This document shows, piece after piece, positions 5,482-59,742 of a stretch of 64,000 nt of DNA. The stretch is from Rebecca billardiae RCC1528. Its lineage: Eukaryota; Protista; Haptophyta. A program made the translations under genes and the position numbers. Under the pieces are notes generated by a model. It had not been told where the DNA came from and did no database searches. It worked only from the letters and a program-made list of their open reading frames with translations. Position 1 is the first letter of the stretch; every line of letters begins with the position of its first letter. The stretch spans positions 434,001 to 498,000 of the forward strand of contig OZ251254.1 in the NCBI GenBank assembly GCA_965240325.2. Reading direction: 5' to 3'.

Positions 5482-8400
5482 CTACAAGTGATTGACGTCT
5501 GATGCGTTGCCGCTGTAGAGGCGGCCGCCGCCATGGTCAGCTGCGCTCCCCATCGGCCCGCCGAGCGGCTGGCCACGCTTCTGCGCCTGCTGGCGGCGGT
5601 ACGCGAACGCGCCCCCGGCGCAGCAGCAGCAGCAGGCCAAGATCGCGAGGACGATGCCGGCAATCTCGCCCGCGCTCAGCTCACTGAGCGTTTCGCCCAG
5701 GTCCGGGAACCGGCCGCCGTCGTCGTCATCGTCGTCGTCGTCGTCGTCATCCCCGCTGCTGCCGCTGTCGCCGCCGCCCGACGAGCCGCCCGAGGTCGCG
5801 GTGCCGTCGTCCTGCACGATCGGGTCGTACCACGCGGACGCGCTGAACTTGTCGAATCTCAGCGTGATCTCGTACTTGGTCGTGCCGGAGAGCGCGAGCT
5901 GCGGGTACCCGGCCGGCATCGTCGTCCACGAGCCGTCCAGCTTGGCCACGTCGGACACGACCATCGTCGCGCCGCTGCCCAGCGAGTACGTGTTGTTGGC
6001 GACCGGCGTCAGGTCGAGCGCCTCGCCCGCCTTGGACTTGACCTCGATGCCGATGTCGAGGAACTCGCCCGTCTCGCCCTGGCACGGGTTGCCGCTCTCG
6101 CCCGCGCAGAAGGGCCAGTTGAGCACCTGCACAGGGCACGCGCGCGCGCGCGCGGCGGGGGCGGTGGGGCGGCGGGGCACACGCACACGGCTCAGCGCAC
6201 TGCCGCCTGGCAAGCCAACGTCGCGCGGCGCGGCGGCGCGGCGCGGCGTGCTGCACCTCGACGTTGAACTTGAGCGTGCCCGCGGTGACGGCGTACACTT
6301 CGTCGGGCGTGGGCGTGATCGTGCCGTTCTCGGTGAAGATGAGCGCGGTGATGCGCAGGTCGGCGGCGTCGTCGACCAGCTTGACGCTGAAGTCGATCGC
6401 GCTCGCGCCCACGCCAGACACGTTGGTGGCGTACGCCGCGCCGAAGGTGAAGTCGGTGTTGGCGAAGGTGTTGCGCGAGTGCTTCCCGTCGTTTGGACCG
6501 GACTGCCCCACCGTGCCGCCGCCCGAGTCGCGCTCGACGATGCTCGACATGGTCACCTGCACCTTGTCGTCGTCCGACGCGTCCTCCGAGCCGTACACCA
6601 TCTTGCCGGACTGGCCGAGGATGCGCACGCTGTTGACCGGCGCGGAGTCGTCGCCTGACGCCGGACTGGTGAGCTCCTGCGTCGCGGGCGAGGGCGGCGG
6701 CGGCGAGCTCGGCGGCGGCGGCGGCGGGCTGGGCGGCGGGCTGGGCGGCGAGATCGCCACGTCCTGCACGAGCGGGTCGTACCACGCCGACGCGTTGAAC
6801 TTGTCGAAGCGCAGCGTGAGCTCGTACTTGGACGACCCCGAGAGCGAGAGCTCCGGGTACCCCGACGGCATCTCCGCCCAGGAGCCGTCCAGCTGGACCG
6901 CGTTAGAGACAATCAGCTCGGCGCCGCTGCCCAGCGAGTACGTGTTGTCCGCGATCGGCGTGAGGCTGAGGTTGCCGTTCGCCTTGGACTTGACCTCGAT
7001 GCCGATGTCGAGGAACTCGCCCGTCTCGCCCTGGCACGGGTTGCCGCTCTCGCCCGCGCAGAAGGGCCAGTTGAGCACCTGTGCGGCCGCGTGCGCGCGC
7101 GGGCGGGCGTACACGCAAGGGGCACGCGAGCTGTCAGCGCTCAGCGCGCGCGCACCGGCCGCAGGAGCGCGGGGGTCCTGCGCGCACCTCCACGTTGAAC
7201 TTGAGCGTGCCGTCGGTCACGTTGTACGACTCGGACGGGGTCGGGTAGATCGTGCCGCTCTCGGTGAAGATGAGCGCGGTGATGCGCAGGTCAGCCGCGT
7301 CATCCACGAGGGAGACTTCAAAATCTATGGCCGTCGCCGCCACGCCGGAGACGTTGGTGGCGTACGCCGCGCCGAAGGTGAAGTCGGTGTTGGCGAAGGT
7401 GTTGCGCGAGTGCTTGCCCGCGTTCGGCCCCGACTGCCCCACCGTGCCGCCGCCCGAGTCGCGCTCGACGATGCTCGACATGGTCACCTGCACGCGCTCG
7501 TCGTCGGGCGCGGCCGCCTGTCCGTACACCATCTTGCCCGACTGGCCGAGGATGCGCACGCTGTACTCGGAGGTCTCGAGCTCGCGGTCGGGGCCGGGCG
7601 GCGGCGGGCTCGGCGGCGGGCTCGGCGGCGGGGGCGGTGGGCTCGGCGGCGGGCTCGGCGGCGGGCTCGGCGGCGGTGGGGGCGGGCTCGGCGGCGGGGC
7701 CGGCGGCGGGGCCGGCGGCGGGGTCGGCGGCGGGGTCGGCTCGGTCGACTCGGTGCCCACGTCCTGCACGACCGGGTCGTACCACGCCGACGCGTTGAAC
7801 TTGTCGAAGCGCAGCGTGAGCTGGTACTTGGACGACCCCGAGAGCGAGAGCGCCGGGTACCCCGACGGCATCTCCGCCCAGGAGCCGTCCAGCTGGACCG
7901 CGTTGGAGACAATCAGCTCGGCGCCGCTGCCCAGCGAGTACGTGTTGTTGGCGACCGGCGTGAGGCTGAGCGTCTGGTTCGCCTTGGACTTGACCTCGAT
8001 GCCGATGTCGAGGAACTCACCCGTCTCGCCCTGGCACGGGTTGCCGCTCTCGCCCGCGCAGAAGGGCCAGTTGAGCACCTGTGCGGACGTGCGCGCGCGC
8101 GTGCGGGCGGACGCTCAGACGCTGTGCGCACGGTCGCGCGCGCGCGACGCCCTCGTGTGCCCACGTGCGCGCAAGCACCTCGACGTTGAACTTGAGCGCG
8201 CCCTTGCTCACGTTGTACGTGTCCATCGGCGTGGGCGCGATCGTGCCGCTCTCGTTGAATATGAGCGCGGTGATGCGCAGGTCAGCCGCGTCATTGACGA
8301 GGGAGACTTCAAAATCAATCGCATGCGCGGCCACGCCGGAGACGTTGGTGGCGTACGGCGCGCCGAAGGTGAAGTCGGTGCTGGCGAACGTGTTGCGCGA

Positions 8401-8643
8401 GTGCTTCCCGTCGTTCGGCCCGCTCTGGCCGACCCGGTTGCCGCCCGAGTCGCGCTCGGTGATGCTCGACATCGTCACCTGCACCTTGTCGTCATCCGAC
8501 GCGTCCGACGAGCCGTACACCATCTTGCCGGACTGGCCGAGGATGCGCACGCTGAAGTCAGATGTCAGCAGCTCGCGCTCGTCCGCCACGGCGTGCGCCG
8601 TCAAGGCCGCCAGGACGACGGCGAGGCATCGCATCGTGCGCAT
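5482..8643 (-). CDS. Type I membrane protein (about 940 aa) with three tandem SAARP/CARP-like domains, Pro-rich linkers, poly-Asp, a TM helix and a Cys run. Exons 8643-8179, 8078-7188, 7078-6257, 6126-5482
   Basis: Signal peptide MRCLAVVLAALTAHAVA. Domain motifs VRILGQSGKM, HSRNTFA.TDFTF, GTLKFNVEVLNWPFC, GEFLDIGIEVKS, MPSGYP, LRFDKF..WYDP. Three phase-0 GT-AG introns, each at NVE|VLN. C-terminus GD11G..IAGIVLAILACCCCCAGG. Confidence 0.8.
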
Positions 8644-8908: not shown

Positions 8909-10305
8909 GGACTAATTCTATGATTTAAAGACACAGGCACGAGGGCGCAGCTCTCCTGATTCGTCTGTCGAAGTACTGAATGGAGTTAATGGAGGATGTC
9001 GGAGCGCGTTGGCCGCGGGTGAGGGAGTCGTCGTAACCGATGCTGATCACACGGTCACTGAGGTAGTAGGCGCCCGGGGATGCCGCTGTTTTGCAGTCGT
9101 CGTCGGCCTTGGTCATCATGTAGTTGCCCGTGTCGTCGTCGTCCGAGGCTGTTCAAGTTGATGCCGTAGTGCAGGTAGTGGATGTGGTCGCCCGGGCCGG
9201 TGTGCGCGGCCTAGTGGCCTTGCCGAGTTGAGGGAGTAGTCGCCCTTGCCGTTGAGGAAGTCGTCGTCCTTGCCGTTGAGGAAGTCGTCGCCCTGGCCGC
9301 AGAGGAAGTCGTCGCCCTTGCCGTTGAGGAAGTCGTCGTCCTGGCCGCTGAGGGTGCCTGCGCTGCCCAACCGGGCGCGTCTGGCGCGCCAGCGCCGCGC
9401 GCGGCTCTACGCCAGCGACTGCGGCACGGCGGCAGCCAGGTCACGGGGGGGGTCGCCGAGGGACGCGGTGCGAGCCTGCTTGGCCGGCTTGGCGTCGCTC
9501 CCGCCAGCGGAGGAGGGCCCATCCTCCTCCGCCGGCGTGGACGGCTCGGTCGCCGCGCGCTTGCCGGCTGCCGCGGCGCCGGGGGGCAGGACCAGGCGGT
9601 AGTTGGACTAATTCTATGATTTAAAGACACAGGCACGAGGGCGCAGCTCTCCTGATTCGTCTGTCGAAGTACTGAATGGAGTTAATGGAGGATGTCGGAG
9701 CGCGTTGGCCGCGGGTGAGGGAGTCGTCGTAACCGATGCTGATCACACGGTCACTGAGGTAGTAGGCGCCCGGGGATGCCGCTGTTTTGCAGTCGTCGTC
9801 GGCCTTGGTCATCATGTAGTTGCCCGTGTCGTCGTCGTCCGAGGCTGTTCAAGTTGATGCCGTAGTGCAGGTAGTGGATGTGGTCGCCCGGGCCGGTGTG
9901 CGCGGCCTAGTGGCCTTGCCGAGTTGAGGGAGTAGTCGCCCTTGCCGTTGAGGAAGTCGTCGTCCTTGCCGTTGAGGAAGTCGTCGCCCTGGCCGCAGAG
10001 GAAGTCGTCGCCCTTGCCGTTGAGGAAGTCGTCGTCCTGGCCGCTGAGGGTGCCTGCGCTGCCCAACCGGGCGCGTCTGGCGCGCCAGCGCCGCGCGCGG
10101 CTCTACGCCAGCGACTGCGGCGCGGCGGCAGCCAGGTCACGGGGGGGGTCGCCGAGGGACGCGGTGCGAGCCTGCTTGGCCGGCTTGGCGTCGCTCCCGC
10201 CAGCGGAGGAGGGCCCATCCTCCTCCGCCGGCGTGGACGGCTCGGTCGCCGCGCGCTTGCCGGCTGCCGCGGCGCCGGGGGGCAGGACCAGGCGGTAGTT
10301 GGACT
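8909..10305. repeat. Tandem duplication with a 696-bp unit (8909-9604, 9605-10300), containing internal 21-bp repeats
   Basis: The copies are nearly identical (one substitution seen, 9426 vs 10122). GGACT microhomology at 8909, 9605 and 10301. Confidence 0.9.
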
Positions 10306-37810: not shown

Positions 37811-40800
37811 TCACAGTCCGCCGCGGCCGCGCGCCTGCGGCAGCTGACACGTCACCGCGCCGATCTCGCCGCGTATCTCGCCGACGGCCAAGCCGCCGCG
37901 CTCGAGCGCGCAGCAGAACGGGCGCAGGCTGGGCACAGCCACCGGCGTGCCAGGCGGCGGCTGCTGGTCGGGGCCGCGGCCCGCGCCCGCGGACGACGAA
38001 GCCTCGTCCGCGCCGTCGCCGGCCGCGCTCGCGCATCCTGCAGTTCGGGGCGCGCGCTCGGGGCACGCGCCCCCCGGCCCGCCCTCCGGAGGTGCCGCCG
38101 GGGCCGGCAGCAGCACCGAGCCGTCGCCGAGGCAGCGCCGGCCTGCGTGCACGCTCAGAGCGAGGTGCGGCACACTGCCGCGCAGCGGTGGGAGCAGCTC
38201 GGCGGGGAGGAAGAGCGAGATCGCGATCTCGCGCGCGGCCTGCTGCTCTCTCGGCGGCTGCGGCGCGGCAGCCGTCCCGTCCGCCGGGTTCGGCGCAGGG
38301 GGCTCGGCGTGGGCGGCGCACACGCGCGCCGCGGGCAGTGGCACGCGCAGCGCGCCCGCCAGCGTGACGTGGACGTCGTAGCGTGACAGCGCGTGCGCCG
38401 CGCCGCCGCGCTCGCGAGCGGGCTGCGCCGGGGCGGGCGGCGGCTGCGCCGCCGCGGCCGCGGCCGCCGAGCTCGCGGCTGCGCGCGCCGCAGTGCGCGC
38501 GGCGCGCGCGGCAGGCAACAGGGCCGGTGGCGGCTGCAGGGGCTGGGCCGAGCGGTCGCGCGCGGCCGCGCCCTCGGCGCCAGCCGGCCCCGCGTGCGCT
38601 GCGTCCGCGTCCGCGCGCCAACCGGCCGCGTGCGGGGCGAGCGCGCCGCCGCCTTCGTCACCACTCGAGTGTGCGCCATGCGAGCCCTCCGCGCCCGCGC
38701 CGCCATCGCCCGCGCCGCCATCGTCTGAATCGCCATCGTCGCTCGCTGACAGCGGTGCCGCCCCCGGCAGGTGGGCGGAGTCGACCGCCGCCGCCGAGGG
38801 CCGGGGCGACGGTGCGCTGGGTGCGTGCGGGGGCGACGGCACGTGCCGCGCCGCGGCGGGCGAGCAGGAGTCCGCCGCCGCACTCGGCCACGGCGGCGGC
38901 GGCGGCGCGACGGTTCGCAGCCTGTCAGCCTCGCGACACGCGGCCCGGCACTGGGTGGCGTCGGGCGGCGCGTCGGCCGCGCAGCCCGCAGCTGGGACGG
39001 ATGGCCGCTCGCGCCGCGCGCCGCCGTGCTCGGCGTGGCGCGCGGGCGCCCCGGCCGAGCCTCCGGCCGCGCTGCCGTCCGCGCCGCCGCCGCCCTCGCC
39101 CGCTTGCCACGTCGAGCGACGCGACCCGAGGGCGCGCGCGCGCTGAGCCGCTGTGGCGGCCCAGAGTTGAGCGCCGCCGGCGGCGGCGGCAGCCGCGCCG
39201 CCTTCGCCCTGGCACGCGGCGGCGTGCGCGTCGGCCGACGAGTCTGCGGATGGCGGCTGCCCGGCGTGCGCGCCGGCGTCGTGCGCGCGCGCGCTCACAC
39301 TGCCACCGCTGCCGTGCCGACCCGCGGGGCCGTCCGCGGCGGAGAGGCTGCTTTGGTGGTGGCGGTGGTGGTGGCGGTGGCGGCGCGGCGTGTGCCGGCT
39401 GTCAGCGGCGCCGCCGCCTCCACCGCCGCCGCCGCCGCCTCCAGCTGTGTGCTGCTGCTGCTGCTGGTGATGATGGCGGTGGCGGTGGTTGTGAGAGTCG
39501 CTGGCCGCGCCGCCGCCGCCGCCGCTGCCACCGCCGCCGCCGCCGCCGCCGCCGCCGGCCGCGCTCGCGCGCGGCGCGAGCACGAGCGCCGAGATTGCAA
39601 TCTGGACGAGCACGACGCCACAGCGCGGCGGCAGGCGCACCGGCGGCGCGGGCCAGAGCTCAAATTGCATGGCGACGGGCGTGTGGTCGCTGCCGAGCAC
39701 TTGGGGTGCGCTCCAGTACGCAACGGGTCGGAGCTCGCCGGCCGCCGCGCGGCGCGCGGGCGCGGGCGCCGCCGCCGGCTGCGGCTGCGGCTGCATAGCG
39801 CGCGGCTCGACGGCGGTGCCGCCGCCAGCCGCGGCCTCGGCCGCGCCGGCCGCCGTGCGCTCCACCCCCGCCGCCCCTTCCGCCGCCTCCGCCGCCGCCG
39901 GGCGCACGTGCAGCACGCGATCGCACCAGGAGGGCGTGCGGAGCTTATCGGTGGCGTAGGCGGCACTGGCCGCGCTCTCACACGCCGGCGCGCCGCCGCC
40001 CGGCGCGGCCGAGCCGCCGCCGCCGCCGACCGTCGGGCAGGCGGCGGCGGCGGACGCGGCGGCGGCCGGCTCCGAGCCGGCGCCGCCGGGCGGCGCGCAC
40101 CGGCCGGCGCGCGCCGTGCGCTCCATCCGGAATGTGGGCATGAAGGTGATAGGCGCCTCGCGCGCGCGCGGAAGGAATCGCCCGGCCGCGCGCTCCGCGC
40201 TCAGCTGGTCGTGCTCCAAGAGCGACGCCCACGCCGCCGCCGAAGCCGGCGGCGCGGCGGGCGCGCCGACGAGCTGCGCGCCGGCGCGCGCCGTCGCGTC
40301 GGCGTGCGCGTCGGCGGCGCCGGCGTCTGTGGCTGTGGCGAGCGGCGGCGCGTCGGCGCGCGGCGCGACGAGCGTGAGCGCGCGCTCGCACGGCACATCC
40401 ACGCGGTAGTTGAGATCTCCAAAGATGAGCACGTGGTCGAAGATCGAGAGAAGCTCGTGGCGCGCGCCGGGGCAGCCATGGCCGCCGCCGCCGCCCGGCG
40501 CGCCGCTGCCGCCGTCGAGCGCGCCGAGGTCGGCGGCGGCGGCGGCGGCCGGCAGCGTCTCCACCAGCTCGGCCATGTCGGCGTTGCGCTGCGCGGCCAT
40601 GGCCTCGTGCGCCGCGAGGTGGCAGTTTACGAACGCGAGCGAGGTGCCTCCGATCACGAGCTCCGCGCCCACCGCACCCTTGTTGGCGGCCATGCCCGAC
40701 GCTCCGGTGTACTTGGAGAGCACAGTGCCGCGCGCGCCGAGGCACGGCGCGAGCGAGCGCGACGCGAGCGCGAGCAGCCGCACGCCCGCGAGGTGTGACA

Positions 40801-42475
40801 TGCCTTCCTGCAGCGCGCGGTCCAGCTTGCGGCCGACCGCGCTCGCGCCGCGCCGCTTCGCGCCGCCGCCGCGCGCGAGCGCCGCGCACTGCAGCTGGCC
40901 CACGTCCACGGGCCCGGCCGGGTCGGTGATCGACAGCTGCGCCACGCGCTCGTACTCGGGGCCCGCCGCCGCGGCGAGCGCGGACCACAGGGCCTCCTCC
41001 TTCTCCACGGGGCACTCCTGCACGCCAATCACGAGCAGAGTCGGCGCGGCCGCGGCCGACGGCGCGGCCGCGGCCGACGGCGCGGCCGCAGCCGTCTCGG
41101 CCAGCCAGTCGGCGGCGGTGCCGTCCGCGGCCGCCGCCGCGCCCGCCCGAGCGCGCGCGTGAGCGCCGCCGTCGTCGTCGTCGCCGGTGGCGCGCGCGCC
41201 GCCCGGCGCGCGCCCACCGCTCCGCCGCTCTCCACCGGGGACCACATCGCCCGAGGCGAGGCCACACAGCCAGCGGCCAAGCGCCTCGGCCGCCGCCGCG
41301 CTCGCCGCCGGCTCGGAGCCGCCGCCGCCGCCGACCGCCGTCGCCGCCGGCGGGCCAGACCCGTAGTTCCAGCTGGCGACAATGACGCGGACCGGGCCAG
41401 GCGCGGGCGGTGCCGCCAGCGGCCATGCCGCCGGCGGCGCGGGTGCCTCGGCGCCCGCCGCCGCGCGCGCGCCGCTCGCGCCGCCCGCATCCGAGTCGGC
41501 CGTCGCTGCCGCCGCGCCATGCCAGCCTGCTGCAGGCGTGCCGCTCGCCGCGGCGTCGCGGCACGCGGCCGGCGTGCCGCGCGCGCCGTCGAGCGCGCGC
41601 TCCAGAGCCGCGACGAGCGAAGCCGAACTCTCCAGCGCGCGCGCCGCACACCCGCCCACCGCGGCCGCGCGGCGCGCGCGCGCGACGCTGAGCACTCGGC
41701 AGAGAGCAAGCGTGGCCTCATGCCACGCGACGCAGCGCGCGTGCGCGCGCGCCGCGCCCTCCGCCGCCGCGCCGCCGCCGCCGCAGCCGTGCACGACCGC
41801 CGCCGCCGCACCCGCCGCCGCGCCCGCCGCCGCCTCGGCCTCGTCCTCACAAAAGGACGCGGTGCGCTGCCGCGCGCGCCGCGCGCCGAGGCCACTTAGC
41901 AAGACCGCGGCCGCCACGGCCGCAGGCGCATCCGGCGGGCTCGGCGCCGCGTTGGCCGAGTCGGCGGAGCAGTCCGCGCGCTCGGCCGCTGCTAGGGGCG
42001 GCACTTCGGCCGACGGCAGCGGCTCGGGCGGCGGCTGTGGCGGGAGCGGCGGCGGCGGTGGGAGCGGCGGAAGCCGAGAGGGTGCCTCAACCAACCCACC
42101 GCCACCGGTGGGGTCGGCACCGCGCGCGGGCACGCCGCCACCGCTGGCCGTCCCGCCCCTGCGCTCGGCAGAGCGCGCTGAGCCCGCGCCCACCCCCGAC
42201 AAGGGCGGCCCCCCGGACAGGGCGGACGCTTCGCAGGACGGGGGCGGGCCCCCGGACAGGTCGCCCCCGGACAGGGCGGACGCTCCGGAGGACGGGGGCG
42301 AGGGCGCCTCGGAGGAGCTCCCGCGCGAGCGGTGCGCGCCAACGCCTGAGGACGCGCCGAGCTCATCTGCGCTGCTGCAGCTGTCAGCAGGGCGAGCCCG
42401 GCTGCCAGCACCGCGCCCTCGGTGCGCGCGCGCGGGCTCACACCCCTCCTCCGCTGCGAGGCTGCTGGCGCTGTG

Positions 42476-42543
<68 letters not shown>

Positions 42544-45500
42544 GCGCATGCTCAGAGCGCACGCCGCGGTGCGTGGCCGCGCGCGGCAGCGCGCCGCTCG
42601 AGCCGGCGCCAGCGGAGCCCGTCGCGCCGTGGGCCGAGAGCGTGCGGCAGCAGCTGCCCTCGCTGCCCTCGGCGCCCGCGTCGAAGGGCGGCAGGCGGAG
42701 GTCGGTGCCGCCCGCGCGGACGCTGGGCGGCGGGTGAGCCGGCGGTGAAGCAGGATGCGCGCCAGCCGCGCCGTCGCCGCCGCCGCCGCCGCGCGAGCCC
42801 CCGCCAGCGCGGGCAGCCTCGAGCGAAGCCGCGCCTGGCCGCTCGGCCGAGGCGGATGCGGATGCGGATGTGGAGGCCGACGCGGACGCGGCGGCGGGCT
42901 CTGTGAGCGGTCGGCCGCGCGCCGGGATGATGATCGGCGGCGGCAGCGCGCGCTCGCGAGCCGAGGAGGCGGCCGCGCCGCCGCCCTCGGCCGCGAGCGC
43001 GCCGTCCGCCCCGGCCTCCGAGCCGCCGCCGCCGACCGGCTGTATCCGCAGACGCGCAGACCGCCCGCCGCCACCGCCGCCGCCGCCGCCGCGCACGCCG
43101 CTCGCCGCCGCCGCGCTCGCGGCCTGCTGCGCGCGCGCGTAATCCGCGTGCGCGCGCCGATACGCGAGGAGGGCGTCGTGCGAGTCGGCGCGGATGGCGG
43201 ACAGCGTGCGCTCCAGCCGCGCGCCGCTGTCGGCGAGCCGTGCGCCGTAGCTGCGCAGCGCGTGCGCGCACAGCCGCAGCCGGCCGGCTTGCTCGGTGGC
43301 GCCGCCGCCGAGCGGCGCGCTCCACCCGCCATCGCCGCCGCCGCCGTCCGGGGGAGCCCGGAAGCTTCCGTCCACCGAGCTGCGGAAGCTTCCGTCCAGG
43401 GAAGTCCGGAGGAAGAACCGGACCGTGCCGTCGGACAGCGCCTCGAGCGCAGCCGCGAGCTCCAGCGCGCGGCGGCTCAGCTTTGCGAGCAGCCGGCAGA
43501 ACGCGTCCGCGCCGAGCGAGTGCGTCTTGTCCGCGTGCACGGCGACCAGCAGCGAAGGCGCGTGCACCGCCGCCCGCGCGGCGGGCGCGGCGGGCGCGGC
43601 GGGCGCGGCGGGCGCGGCGGGCGCGGCGGGCGCGGCGGGCGCGGCGGGCGCGGCGGCGCCCTCGGCGCCTGGCATCGGCGTGTGCGGCGCCGAGCCCAGC
43701 GCGGGCGACGAGCCCCCCACGCGCCGCGTCGGGCCGGTCGGCGAGCCTGGAGCCGTGGCAGCGCCCGCGCGCGCGCCGGCCGCCGCGCCGTCGACCGCGC
43801 GCGCCCAGCCGGCGGCGGCGTCGTCGGCGTCGGCCGCGCCGCTTGCGCTTCCGGCTGACGCGCCGCTGGCAGCGCTCAGCACACTCGTCGCCGAGTGGTT
43901 GCGGGCGGAGGTGAGGAAGGCGCGCGCGGCCCTGGCGAGCGCGCTTGCGTCGCCGCTGGAAGCGCCGCGCGCGTGCTGCGAGCGGAACCGAGGTCGGCGG
44001 AGGGTGCTCGCCGCCGCCGAGTGCGGCGGCGGCGGCGGCGGCTGCTGTGACAGCCGCGTGCGCCGCCGCGGCGGCGGCGGCTGGTGCTCCTCGTCCAAGG
44101 GCTCGGCGGCCGCGCCCTCCGCCGCATCTCCGACGGCCGCCTGCGCCTCCACCGCGCTGCCGGCGGGGCGCACGTCCGGCGGCAGGGCGGCTGGCGGCAC
44201 GAGCGCTGCCGCCGCGCGCGCGGCCGGCACCCTCGGCGGCGCGACGCGCGAGCGATCGTCATGGCCGTCCGCGCCGACTTCTGGTGGGAGGGCGGCACTG
44301 GCGCGGTGCACACCGTCTGCGCCGTCGGCGTGCAGAGGCATGTAGGCCGCAGGTGCGTCGCGTGGCGCGGCGCCACCGGCACAGCCCGCGGCTGCCAGCG
44401 TCGAGCGGTCGGCGGCGGCGGCGCGGGCTGCCGCGCCGACCGCGCCCAAGCCTGGCGCATCGAATGCGGCGGCGGCCAGCGGCGGCAGCGGCGGCAACGG
44501 CGGCGGCGGCGGTAGCGGCGGCAGAGACGGCGAGGGCTGCTGCTCCTGCGTGTGCGGCCGCGGCGGCGCGGGCGCCGCCGAAGCCGCCGCGTGCGGCTGC
44601 GGCTGTGGATGCGGCGGCGTGCACGCCGCGGCCCCGACGCCCGCCGCCGCGTGCGCGTGCGCGTGCGCGTGTGTCGCGGCGCCCGGCTGCGGCTGCGGCG
44701 GCGCGGCGTGGGCCGAAGAATAGGCGGGCTGGTGCAGGGCCCAGGCGGTGTAGAGATGGGTGTACCCTCCGGCCGCGCCGCGCACGGCCGCGCGCACGCC
44801 GCGCGCCGTGTCTCGCACCGTCGGCATGTGCGCCCACGCCTGCGCCCGCGCCGGGTCTACCACGCTGCCCCCTGCGGCGGCGGCGGCCGCGGCGGCCGCG
44901 TCGGTCGCCACGAGCGCCGCCGCCGCCGCCGCGCCGACGTCAGAGTGCGTTCGCTGCGCGAGGGCGAGCTCAAGCAGCCGCGCGGCCGCGCGCGGCGCGT
45001 GCGCGTCGAGTAGCGCGTGCGACAGCCTCGCGAAGCGCGCGCACGCCACGATCGACTCGTCCACGCACGCGGCCGTCAGCTCCTCGCGACTTGCCTCGAT
45101 CGCCCTCAACTCTGCACATGCCGCCAACTGCCTGACCTCGCGCTCGGCCGCGGCGGCGCGCTCGGCGGCGGCGGCGGGCGAGGTCGCGGAGCCGCGGCCG
45201 ATGGGCGGCGGCACGCGCGGCGGCGAGAGGCTCGTCGGAATCGCCGCCTCGACGCAGAGCTGCGCGCCGTGCGACGGCGTCGACGACGACGACGGCGGCG
45301 GCGGCGGCGGCGGCGGCGTCGACGGCGGGGCGGCGGATGCCGACTCCGCGGCGGCCGCCGCGCCGGCGCCGGCGCTGGCATCGGCGGCCCTGTCGTCGCG
45401 GAGCTCGTGCAGCAGGCGCTGGGAGCGCGCGTTGAGCTCTACCGCGTCCGCCGCGAGCGTCGGCGCGAAGTCGCGGCCGAGGGACGCCGCGAGCAGCTGC

Positions 45501-45847
45501 GTGAGCTCCGACCACAGCAGCAGGATGGCCGCCGCATCAAACGTCGCGCCCGCAGATTCCTCGTCCGGCGCGGCGGCGCCGAGGGTGAGCAGCAGCCGCG
45601 CGAGCTTGCACAGCGCGCCGTCGAGCCGGTGCCACGCGCGCGAGGCGTGCTTCGCGTCGCTCGCCAGCCGGTGGTGCGCCTCCGCGCGCTGCTGCAGCCC
45701 GCGCTCGCGCTCGCGAAGCATCGGCGCGCCGGGCGCGCGCCCGCCTGTGGCGGCGGCGGCGGCGCGTTGGAGCATCGCACTGATGCTGTCCGCCACCGCG
45801 TGCGCGCTGCGCGCCGACTTGCGCTGGAGCCGGTTGAGCGTCTTCAT
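37811..45847 (-). CDS. Very large inositol polyphosphate 5-phosphatase (about 2680 aa) with helical N-terminal regions and long low-complexity inserts
   Basis: VIVASWNYG, LLVIGVQE, NKGAVG, FVNCHLAAH, IFGDLNYR, EAPITFMPTFR, RTPSWCDRVL, SDHTPV. One uninterrupted ORF with likely start MKTLNRLQ. Confidence 0.88.
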
Positions 45848-46333
45848 CGCCCGCGCGCCGCGCGCCCCGGCGGCGGACGCCGCGGGACGGAGGACGCGGG
45901 GGCCCGGGCCGGGCCGGCTGCTCCCTGGACACGCTCGCACCGCACGTCCCACCGTCCGCACGGGTGCGCAGGACTGCGAAAAGCGAGTCCGGGTCTTCAG
46001 CCGGAAGAAGAGAGCGCTTCCGCGAATCCGCGTGATGGCGGCCAAGTTGAAAGTGGCTCTCGTGGACGGCATCATGGCGAACGCGGCCCGGGCGGCGCGC
46101 GCGGCCCGTGCGCTGCATATCTACTGCTGCGTCATCACGCGACATGCATACGCAGAGTGCCAGGCGCGCTACTACAGAGCTTGCAGGCTGAGCAGACGCG
46201 CGAGAGAGAGGAGGGCCTCGCCATCCGCGAGAGTCGAACGCCCGGCCACGGCCGCACCGCGCCCGCCGCCAGATACTCGTCGACGTCGTCGTCGGACGTC
46301 GGGAGGAGGACATCACCATGATGGGACGCGTCG

Positions 46334-56669: not shown

Positions 56670-57105
56670 GCGTCGAGGCGCATCGTCGAGCGTTTGCGCC
56701 GCGCCGACAGCGTAGAGGGCGGGCGGGCGGGCATGCGACGCCATGCTGCTGGCGCGGCGGCCGCATCAGACATTTCTTCAGACTGAGTTTGGTTCGGGCC
56801 TCGTCGCAAACATGCGCCGTCGAACCTCCACGCGCCAATCAGCGCTCTCGGAATTGGTATCGCACTACTCGCGTGCGTCAGAGTCGCGAATCGGCGCCCT
56901 TTCAGACTCTCTCTCACACGGGCTGCAGATTCGTCAGATGAACAGGCGGGTTCGCGTGGCCGGCCCACCCGGCCGCCCGGCACGGCCGCGCGGCCGCGCG
57001 ACTTTCGCACTGCCTTCCCAAACCTCGCGGCGGGTCGTCATCAGCGCGCTCGCACCGCGCGCTCCCCGCACCGGCGCGCAGCCCGCCCGAGCCCTCGGAC
57101 CGCCG

Positions 57106-57766
57106 ATGGCGCAGATCGCGTACGAGGTGCCCGGCCTCGACCTCTCCGCCTACCGCGCGTCGCTCGTCCTCTTCGTCAACGGCGAGCGCGTCGACGTGCC
57201 GTCGCCGCAGCCGCAGACGCTGCTTCTCGATTTCCTGCGCGCGCGCGGGCTGACGGGCGCGAAGCTGGGCTGCGGCGAGGGCGGGTGCGGCGCGTGCACG
57301 GTGGTGGTCTCGCGCTGGGACGCGCCCGCGGGCGTCGCGCGCCACGCCTCCGTCAACGCCTGCCTGATGCCGCTGCTCGCCGCCGACGGCTGCAACGTGA
57401 CGACTGTCGAAGGCATCGGCTCGGCCGTCGCGGGCAAGCTGGGCGGCGGGAGCGCGAGCGCGGGCGGCGGGCCGGGCACGCCGACGGAGCTGCGCGCGCT
57501 GCACCCCGTGCAGCAGCGCATGACCGAGCTGCACGGCTCGCAGTGCGGCTTCTGCACGCCGGGCGTCGTGATGGCCGTGTATGGCCTACTCCTGCAGCAG
57601 TCGCCAGAGCAGCTCACGACCGCCGCGGTGGAGGAGAGCATGGACGGGAACCTGTGCCGCTGCACGGGGTACCGGCCGATCTGGGACGCGGCGAAGAGCC
57701 TCTGCGTCGACGCGCCGCGCGAGCCGGGCGGCGACAAGTGCGCCGACTGCCCGTCGCGCGCGGGCG

Positions 57767-57798
<32 letters not shown>

Positions 57799-59742
57799 TG
57801 CGGCGGCGGCGGCTGCGGCGGCGGCGGCGGCGGCTGCAGCGGGCACTCGCACGAGTCGAAGCCGAGCGGCGGCGGCGCGGCGGACGTGGAGTCTCTCGGC
57901 GAGCGCTTCGTCGTCTCCACCACCGCGTCCAAGCTCGCGCAGCCGCCCTTCGCCACGCCGTACTCGCAGACGGACGCAGCGGCGGCCGACGCAGAGCGCG
58001 CGCTGCCCGCGGCGGTGCGGGCCGCGACGTCCGCGCCGCCGGACGCGCTGCGCATCGCGGGCGAGGCGTGCGTGTGGTGGCGGCCAGTGTCGCTGGCGGA
58101 CGCGCTGGCGATCAAGGCCGCGTACCCCACGGCGCGCGTCGTCGTGGGCAACACCGAGGTCGGCATCGAGGCGCGGTTCAAAGGCGCGCAGCCAGCGGTC
58201 GTTCTCGCCACCGCCGCCGTGCCTGAGTGCTGCGGCTGCGCGCTCGTGCCAGCGGCGGCGGCAGGCGGCGGCGCGCGGCTGGAGCTGGGCGCGGCGACGC
58301 CGCTCGCGCGTGTGATGGCGCTCTGCGAGGCGCACCACGCCGACGCCCCCGTCTGCGCCGCCATCGCCGCCATGCTGCGCTGGTTTGCGTCGAATCAGAT
58401 CCGCAACGTCGCGTGCCTCGGCGGCAACCTCGCCACCGCCTCGCCCATCTCCGATATGAACCCGCTCCTCGCCGCGGCGGGGGCGAGCCTCGAGCTCGCG
58501 TCCAAGGCGCGGGGCGTGCGGCTCGTCCAGGTCGCCGACTTCTTCAAGGGTGCGCGCCGCCGCGCGCCGCCGCGCACGCCCGCCCTGCCCGCCTGCCGCC
58601 GGGGGCGCGCCGCGCCGCGCGCCCGAGGCTGGTGGGGTGGCGCGCCGCGCCGCGCCGCGCGCGCTCACGCGCCGCGCCGCGCCCCGCCCGCCGCTTCGCG
58701 GCCGCGCGGGCGCAGGGTACCGGCGCGTGGACCTGGCGGAGGACGAGCTGATCGTGCGCGTGCTCGTGCCCGCGCCGCCGCCGCGTGCCGGCGCCGCCTT
58801 CGAGCTGCTCGAGCCGTTCAAGCAAGCGCGGCGGCGCGAAGACGACATCTCGATCGTCACTGGCACGCTGCGCGCGCGCGTCATCGCCAAGGGCGGCGGC
58901 GGCGGTGGGGAGGGCGGCGGGTGGTACGAGGTGGAGGAGGCGTGCCTCGCGTTCGGCGGCCTCGCGCCCACCACCGTCCTCGCGCCCAAGACCGCCGCCT
59001 CGCTGCTCGGCAAGCCCTTCTCCAGAGAATCTCTCGAGCTCGCCCTGGGCAATCTCGGCGCCGAGATTCGCGTCCCGGACGGCGCCCCCGGCGGCCAGGC
59101 GGAGTTCCGCTCGGCGCTGGCGACGTCGTTCCTGTTCAAGTTCTTCGTGCGCGGCGCGCTCAGGCTGGGCGACGCCGCCAGCGCCGCCGGCGCCTCGCTC
59201 CCGCCGCCGCCGCTCATCGACGCCGCCGACGCCTCCGCCGCGCGCTCGTTTGTCGTGGAGCCCAAGCCGAGCACGCGCGGACAGCAGAGCTTTGCGCTGC
59301 GCGCCGAGGTCGCGCCCGGGCTGGAGGCGGCGGTGCTGCCGGAGCTGCCGGCGCGCGCGGACGGGGCCGCCGCCGGCGCGGCGGCGGTCTCCGCCGGCGG
59401 CGGCGCCGGTGCCGCCGACCGCTCCGTCGGCCGCGAGGGCCAATCCGGGCAGAGCGCGACGCACCGCGCGGGAGTCCTGCACACGACGGGCGAGGCGGTC
59501 TACACGGACGATCTGCCGCGCCCGCCGGGGCTGCTGCACGGCTGGCTGGTCACGTCGGCGCGCGCGGCGGCGCGCGTGCTCTCGATCGACGCCTCCGCCG
59601 CGCGCGCGCACGCCGGCGTCGTCGGCGTCTACTTCCACGCAGACCTGCCGCCGGGCGGGAGCAACGAGCTCGGGCCGGTGCTGCATGACGAGGAGTGCTT
59701 CGCGCAGGAGGTGCGTGTGCGTGTGGGTGTGTGTACGCGTGC

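Follow-up and report, generated by a model that had tools for sequence, protein, structure and literature searches.

This analysis concerns a gene in a 64,000-nucleotide stretch of contig OZ251254.1 (assembly GCA_965240325.2, positions 434,001 to 498,000) of the haptophyte Rebecca billardiae RCC1528. The whole stretch is referred to here as the window; positions are those of the whole stretch, which has a G+C content of 73.1%. The gene was read from the DNA letters together with a list of open reading frames (ORFs), and its predicted product is a membrane-anchored protein in which a single domain occurs three times. Judged from its sequence, the gene is a variant in architecture, and a member from outside the animals, of the family defined by the core of the coral SAARPs (skeletal aspartic acid-rich proteins) and CARPs. 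Its parts are as follows.

5482-8643, minus strand: whole gene from start codon to stop, 4 exons, 940 residues (DNA reading plus ORF list)
8179-8643, minus strand: exon 1, 155 residues, with the putative signal peptide (8584-8643) and the N-half of domain 1
8079-8178, minus strand: intron 1, GTGCTT...CACAG, phase 0, 100 nucleotides, position shared with the intron of a relative (L004)
7188-8078, minus strand: exon 2, 297 residues, with the C-half of domain 1 (7761-8078), Ser/Pro linker 1 (7584-7760) and the N-half of domain 2 (7188-7583)
7079-7187, minus strand: intron 2, GTGCGC...CACAG, phase 0, 109 nucleotides
6257-7078, minus strand: exon 3, 274 residues, with the C-half of domain 2 (6761-7078), Ser/Pro linker 2 (6653-6760) and the N-half of domain 3 (6257-6652)
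6127-6256, minus strand: intron 3, GTGCAG...GTGCAG, phase 0, 130 nucleotides
5482-6126, minus strand: exon 4, 214 residues, with the C-half of domain 3 (5809-6126), a Gly/Ser stalk (5752-5808), the 11-Asp run (D11), the transmembrane (TM) helix, the tail and the stop codon (5482-5484)
5719-5751, minus strand: 11-Asp run, 18 residues outside the membrane
5599-5664, minus strand: TM helix, 22 residues, with CCCCC (5620-5634) in its cytosolic half, a likely S-palmitoylation site
5485-5598, minus strand: cytoplasmic tail, 38 residues

All three introns have GTG...CAG ends (GT-AG), lie in phase 0 and interrupt each repeat at the identical spot (KFNVE|VLNWPFC). The N-terminus, which runs from MRTMR through a hydrophobic core to AVA|DE, resembles a signal peptide when judged by eye, and no YxxPhi or dileucine sorting motif was seen by eye in the cytoplasmic tail. 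G+C at third codon positions (GC3) is 0.93-0.99 in the predicted frame, and of the 32 columns with a conservation of 85% or more in the wider family each repeat keeps every one; given these two properties a chance ORF can be ruled out. The PPPS linkers, 11-Asp run, single TM helix and CCCCC described in the initial annotation of this stretch are all seen in the 940-residue model. Its signal peptide and three near-identical domains also have their counterparts in a signal-peptide-like start and three repeats, the repeats being about 238 residues long rather than about 250.

Whether the half-domains are joined as predicted is central to the gene model, and the splice junctions are supported by comparative evidence: (i) the predicted junction puts five residues between KFN and W, the exact spacing of the family; (ii) P0001 (locus L001, JGI metagenomes), a single-domain relative with 60% identity, encodes both halves without a break in a single exon and has its intron at another place; (iii) P0190, a complete transcript ORF in MMETSP1464 (the pavlovophyte Exanthemachrysis gayraliae), reads through the junction point uninterrupted and (iv) L004, a single-domain relative on a Logan contig of 72.8% G+C, has a GT-AG intron that interrupts KFNVQ|LANW. 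Since the intron of the single-domain L004 matches in both position and phase, the junction intron is older than the triplication. The NVE|VLN junctions that had been proposed earlier are thus backed by family spacing, by a contiguous relative, by a transcript and by an intron. In the automatic calling the L004 gene came out as two ORFs, one antisense and one for the C-half; at L004:3289-4448, and also in L005, the N-terminal segment is rich in Gly, Lys and Pro and is not acidic.

To place the domain we built a 227-position profile (A2) with hmmbuild, entering the exon pieces and the L001 pieces as separate rows, and searched exhaustively. It matched 674 cluster representatives at E ≤ 1e-3, of which 429 were at E ≤ 1e-10 and 137 at E ≤ 1e-30. 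The matches included an Actinia tenebrosa protein named 'skeletal aspartic acid-rich protein 2-like' by NCBI (P0041; E 1.6e-42, covering profile positions 5-225 of 227). A Crassostrea virginica protein (P0168) carries the UniRef name 'Skeletal aspartic acid-rich protein 2-like', and further named family members come from Mytilus (P0004 cluster), Tegillarca (P0158), Potamilus (P0166), Actinostola and the jellyfish Sanderia. In BLASTP against a small local set the window half-domains were 31-41% identical to the named animal proteins, with both halves aligned in order and E values down to 1e-20. The non-acidic region of SAARPs and CARPs has been reported to be common to Nematostella, Hydra and bivalves (Takeuchi 2016; PMC4890752). 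By eye, the motifs of the algal repeats are colinear with the Acropora and Stylophora sequences (Adi-SAARP1/2 and CARP4/5) printed in S21 Fig and supplement file 27 of that paper, including the stretches that precede acidic region 1 and those that follow acidic region 2. The shared order is G-x-SGK; E-x-D..G..VG; KHS..F-x-x-x-x-F-x-F; GT-x-KFN-x5-W-x-FC..C..G..G-x-x-LD; Y-x-x-G-x-x-x-E; MP-x-G-F/Y-P; R-F/V-x-KF; Y/I-DP.

Given the profile match to a SAARP2-like protein, the ordered BLASTP halves and the colinear motifs, homology of the repeat to the non-acidic core of SAARP/CARP/acidic SOMP proteins is supported, as the initial annotation had proposed from the motif order. A first word search yielded one relative, and a later one seeded with the Actinia protein returned no scleractinian sequence. 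Pfam contained no family for the domain when the four exon products and 18 full-length relatives were searched, and gave scattered weak matches only over the 149 alignment members at E ≤ 10. Sequence searches of the PDB with two exon pieces and the family profile yielded nothing useful, the family profile having no match at E ≤ 10. A literature search found no paper describing the SAARP/CARP-core family in algae.

The three repeats are 79-93% identical as protein (81-83% in the N-halves and 79-93% in the C-halves) and 82-87% identical as DNA, and their introns align in part. Because DNA identity is this high and the partly alignable introns share one insertion point, the triplication is best read as having arisen within the gene, by tandem duplication of a half-domain/intron/half-domain unit. 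In a FastTree tree of 149 domain rows the window repeats are one another's nearest relatives (99) and fall in a subclade with MMETSP and metagenome sequences, bivalve and cnidarian rows being in other clades; most rows carry no taxon label, so that an ancient origin and a transfer are not separable by this tree. The window holds no further copies of the domain. Values of dN/dS between repeats are 0.28-0.77 (0.68-0.77 for the C-halves). The linkers, of 59 and 36 residues, consist mostly of SPPP, PPPS and SPPPPPP units, that is, the Ser-Pro(3-6) pattern of extensin-like sequences, and the ectodomain carries 13 N-glycosylation sequons. Asp accounts for 71 of the 940 residues (7.6%), and acidic residues exceed basic ones by about 64.

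Structure models were made for two relatives. That of P0017:1-235, the closest contiguous relative (about 50% identical to the window N-halves), was built from the 149-row alignment and reached a pLDDT of 93.2 and a pTM of 0.90; that of the Actinia SAARP2-like domain reached 92.0 and 0.90. Both models are all-beta. The nearest solved structure is the luminal domain of GLMP (PDB 6NYQ, 8R8Q), 3-5 Z units above all others, and the models are predicted to have the luminal beta-sandwich fold of GLMP/NCU-G1 (PF15065). NCU-G1 was not matched by any of 149 family members at E ≤ 10, nor by any of eight full-length members at E ≤ 1. The domain would therefore be GLMP-like in fold, the relationship being a predicted fold resemblance with no sequence-level link. 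According to the GLMP paper (PMC11252000), GLMP resembles the N-terminal domain of cellodextrin phosphorylase, which is also among the structural matches of the domain model. In a 2026 preprint the CARP4/SAARP1 core is presented as a sandwich of 5+7 strands "resembling Ig or FnIII", with no mention of GLMP, and our literature search found no paper that treats GLMP together with SAARP/CARP4. In the ESM Atlas a shape search returned archaeal hypothetical proteins of about 360 residues (Bathyarchaeota, Thermoplasmatota) at TM-scores of 0.72-0.74 over about 208 residues, and a feature search ranked the same clusters first, weakly, at 0.78; we treat these archaeal clusters as a lead only.

The window protein has both the signal-peptide-like start and the C-terminal membrane anchor (TM helix at 5599-5664) of the SAARP/CARP-core family. 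Among 163 family proteins with a complete last domain, 119 (73%), including all named animal members, have a hydrophobic segment within 6 residues of the end and so resemble glycosylphosphatidylinositol (GPI) signals; 21 have a TM helix followed by a tail of at least 10 residues, as do the window protein and its closest algal kin, and the remaining 23 have neither. The coral literature calls such C-terminal hydrophobic ends transmembrane domains. No CCC was found near a TM helix in 181 family proteins examined, among which the CCCCC of the window protein is unique. Other members of the family combine the domain with PAN, F5/8-C, EGF, disintegrin, C-type lectin, peptidase M6 and Hint domains. 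The GPI-signal-like ends, TM helices and partner domains across the family point to a location on the outer face of the plasma membrane. The tripled, membrane-anchored surface protein of the initial annotation is borne out in its repeats and TM helix, and its surface location is probable.

Individual fusion proteins include P0003, P0133, P0143, P0083 and P0047, in which the domain is joined to F5/8-C plus PAN, to a C-type lectin, to peptidase M6, to a disintegrin or to EGF. P0014 (469 residues, Logan/JGI) has a SAARP-like domain followed by Hint (Pfam E 1.2e-15), an architecture of the hedgehog autoprocessing type, by which the domain could be released from its carrier. At L001:2637-4522, 1.4-3.3 kb upstream of the single-domain SAARP-like relative, there are two genes with Pfam HPAT (hydroxyproline O-arabinosyltransferase), and HPAT occurs at a matching distance in L002 and L003. 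This could be chance, but it fits Ser/Pro linkers with arabinosylated hydroxyproline.

We favor, with moderate confidence, the possibility that the product is a type I glycoprotein on the cell surface of a haptophyte that is very GC-rich and probably a pavlovophyte, where it would act without enzymatic activity as a multivalent binder and spacer in the glycocalyx or cell covering or in adhesion and would not form mineral. After cleavage of the signal peptide, three tandem beta-supersandwich domains of about 230 residues would be displayed. The extensin-like Ser/Pro linkers of 59 and 36 residues would hold them apart; these are probably hydroxylated and O-glycosylated and may form stiff rods of about 10-18 nm. 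The ectodomain would carry glycans at its 13 sequons and stand on the Gly/Ser stalk, with D11 just outside the membrane. The five Cys of the TM helix probably carry palmitate, and the resulting anchorage would be lipid-raft-like and similar to that of most relatives, which have GPI-type tails; CCCCC is unique in the family sample, and we infer that palmitoylation replaces the lipid anchor of those relatives. Each supersandwich may bind a glycan or a protein ligand, the fold relatives suggesting a glycan and GLMP a protein partner, and the poly-Asp collar could add a local cation-binding patch. In corals, insertion of Asp-rich loops into the same module would later have given rise to skeletal proteins.

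What we observed is the gene structure, the homology, the fold of two relatives, the conservation in each repeat and the anchor types of the family; the modifications, location, ligand and role are inferred. Several points weigh against this explanation. Support for the predicted splicing of the window gene is comparative only, the signal peptide was called by eye, and the TM helix by eye and with a hydropathy scan. The dN/dS values between repeats are only moderately below 1, although with GC3 near 0.95 dS is probably underestimated. The structure models are of two relatives (about 50% and 33% identical) and not of the window protein itself, and GLMP, to which they are structurally closest, serves as an accessory subunit in the lysosome and not as a surface adhesin.

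We consider unlikely an alternative in which the protein is a GLMP-like accessory subunit of the endolysosomal or vacuolar membrane, whose TM helix and luminal loop would bring it together with a polytopic transporter, the protein's glycans shielding the transporter from proteases. There is a model for such a role in GLMP, which shields MFSD1 (PMC11252000). The rank of GLMP as top structural match speaks for this possibility, as do a shared topology (signal peptide, one type of beta-sandwich, TM helix, short tail) and the 13 sequons. Against it, neither NCU-G1 nor the PDB yields a sequence link; the GPI-signal-like, tail-less ends of 73% of the family fit poorly with pairing through a TM helix; three domains on Ser/Pro rods suit a surface or wall protein and the tail lacks the sorting motifs YxxPhi and dileucine. 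No transporter gene adjoins the gene either, though we also regard this as no evidence either way. With the GLMP/NCU-G1 luminal domain (6NYQ, 8R8Q) identity is about 10% with no similarity at the level of hidden Markov models, and GLMP is a single-domain, lysosomal protein with MFSD1 as its partner.

The possibility that the window protein is a Ca2+-binding or mineral- or scale-templating matrix protein, the algal counterpart of the coral skeletal acidic proteins, was the suggestion of the initial annotation and has in its favor the homology to the SAARP/CARP core. It could draw further support from the D11 run and the excess of acidic residues, from a mildly acidic first loop at the site of SAARP acidic region 1 and from the proposal that membrane-anchored coral SAARP2/3 serve as a cell-crystal bridge (PMC4890752). 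The skeletal SAARPs and CARPs of corals have two Asp-rich regions in the core and about 20% Asp (PMC3748352). In the printed sequences these two regions are, by eye, loop insertions in one continuous domain. Both intradomain inserts are absent from the algal repeats: the site of acidic region 1 is occupied by a nine-residue loop (SSDASDDDK in repeat 1) within a 16-residue segment, the second insert-bearing segment is about 26 residues long, and neither has a long acidic run. The only poly-Asp run of the window protein is juxtamembrane, outside the domain, and its Asp content of 7.6% falls well short of that of SAARPs.

The wider family gives the same picture. Across the family the loops equivalent to the insert-bearing ones are neutral or basic, neither being acidic, and in animal non-skeletal members the second is Lys-rich; acidic runs reach at most 8 residues in the 181 family proteins. 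We also considered whether the acidic-region-1 loop might be acidic throughout the family and rejected this, the loop's median Asp plus Glu content (12%) being the value for the whole domain. The family is common in non-calcifying anemones, a jellyfish and protists. With a window G+C of 73.1% against 73.25% for Diacronema lutheri, the host is probably a non-calcifying pavlovophyte that makes no mineral; to our knowledge, pavlovophytes do not calcify. We therefore hold a mineral-forming role to be distinctly unlikely, and the earlier suggestion of a biomineralisation-associated fold that binds Ca2+ or templates scales finds no backing in a domain that lacks the inserts, in a family that is non-acidic and that occurs in non-calcifiers. 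Since an alga that probably does not mineralise has three membrane-anchored copies of it, the SAARP/CARP core is probably an old and widespread eukaryotic surface module and not a biomineralisation device. Acidic low complexity recurs beside the domain in this lineage (the N-terminal segment of the Exanthemachrysis homologue is 34% Asp plus Glu), and because of this a cation-binding side role is possible.

We regard as improbable the third alternative, in which the protein is a membrane-tethered member of the galactose-mutarotase superfamily, acting either as a carbohydrate-active enzyme or as a lectin that binds sugar. Only its enzyme part is truly a rival, since the lectin part overlaps with the surface-binding explanation that we favor. 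Compared with galactose-mutarotase-like supersandwich proteins (aldose 1-epimerases; the N-terminal domains of GH97, GH129, GH65 and GH94; YidC P1) there is a likeness of fold and no sequence similarity, and those are enzymes or parts of enzymes, whereas nothing in the window protein points to catalysis. The Pfam match and catalytic His/Glu arrangement that mark an aldose 1-epimerase or galactose mutarotase were not found together in it, there is no Pfam match to aldose epimerase or to any glycoside hydrolase (GH) family, and the closest structure, GLMP, is non-catalytic; on the last two grounds the enzyme was rejected.

That the gene is mis-modelled or decaying, its repeats being real but not expressed as one 940-residue protein, could be argued from the C-half dN/dS of 0.68-0.77 and from the comparative nature of the gene-model support, and is very improbable given four open exons, three GT-AG phase-0 introns, 32 of 32 conserved positions in each repeat, a GC3 of 0.93-0.99 and a signal peptide and TM helix that frame the model, most of which also led us to reject a chance ORF or pseudogene.

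The multivalent surface glycoprotein that we favor can be set beside several known systems. With SAARP1/2/3, CARP4/5 and acidic SOMP/P27 (PMC3748352, PMC4890752) it has in common the core of about 230 residues, the colinear motifs, the signal peptide and a C-terminal hydrophobic anchor. The coral proteins have one domain with two long Asp-rich inserts (about 20% Asp) and are occluded in aragonite, whereas in the algal protein the loops are short, the domains number three and sit on Ser/Pro rods, poly-Asp lies outside the domain next to the membrane, and there is a TM helix with CCCCC and a tail. The anemone and bivalve SAARP2-like proteins (P0041, P0168, P0166, P0158, P0004) share the domain, at 31-41% identity per half, likewise have no acidic inserts and carry one to three domains; they differ in having GPI-signal-like tails and a Lys-rich second loop, and in being without Ser/Pro rods, D11 or poly-Cys. 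Algal chimeric hydroxyproline-rich glycoproteins, such as the volvocine pherophorins, are built of globular domains separated by Ser-Pro rods. Pherophorin-type glycoproteins thus resemble the window protein in carrying globular modules on SPPP-type rods and in being secreted or on the surface, while the window protein has another globular domain, a membrane anchor in place of the wall and a host in another algal lineage.

A broader scenario, which we put forward tentatively, unites the SAARP/CARP core with the luminal domain of GLMP in a single ancient superfamily of supersandwich ectodomains anchored at their C-termini, spread across eukaryotes and perhaps with archaeal look-alikes, in which the haptophyte expanded the module on Ser/Pro rods for its cell covering and corals inserted poly-Asp loops. 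If this is true, the D11 collar and the acidic Exanthemachrysis N-terminus would show acidic decoration arising repeatedly outside a mineral context. CARP4/SAARP1-type proteins are among the most abundant in coral skeletons, and the role of their folded core is unexplained. The present results make that core part of a large unannotated family of eukaryotic surface domains, without a Pfam model, present in non-calcifying algae and transcribed in a pavlovophyte, for which the GLMP-like supersandwich would be the first structural anchor. The origin of a key family of coral skeletal proteins would thereby extend well beyond animals, and the question would shift from how an acidic protein makes mineral to what an old surface module binds, for which non-animal systems are now usable.

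The other genes of the window are unrelated to this one: the neighbours include a TPX2-like protein, a histidine-kinase-type ATPase, a P450, a DNA polymerase phi, a xanthine-dehydrogenase-type protein and a GT47. Directly upstream of the gene an ORF at 9116-9370 on the minus strand holds repeated DDFLNGKG-like units. An uninterrupted ORF of 2,754 residues lies at 37811-46075 on the minus strand, with Exo_endo_phos2 near residue 1,800 as its sole Pfam match and the remainder unannotated. Finally, an ORF on the plus strand at 56743-59688 has Fer2, Fer2_2 and FAD_binding_5, like the N-terminal part of a xanthine-dehydrogenase-type enzyme.

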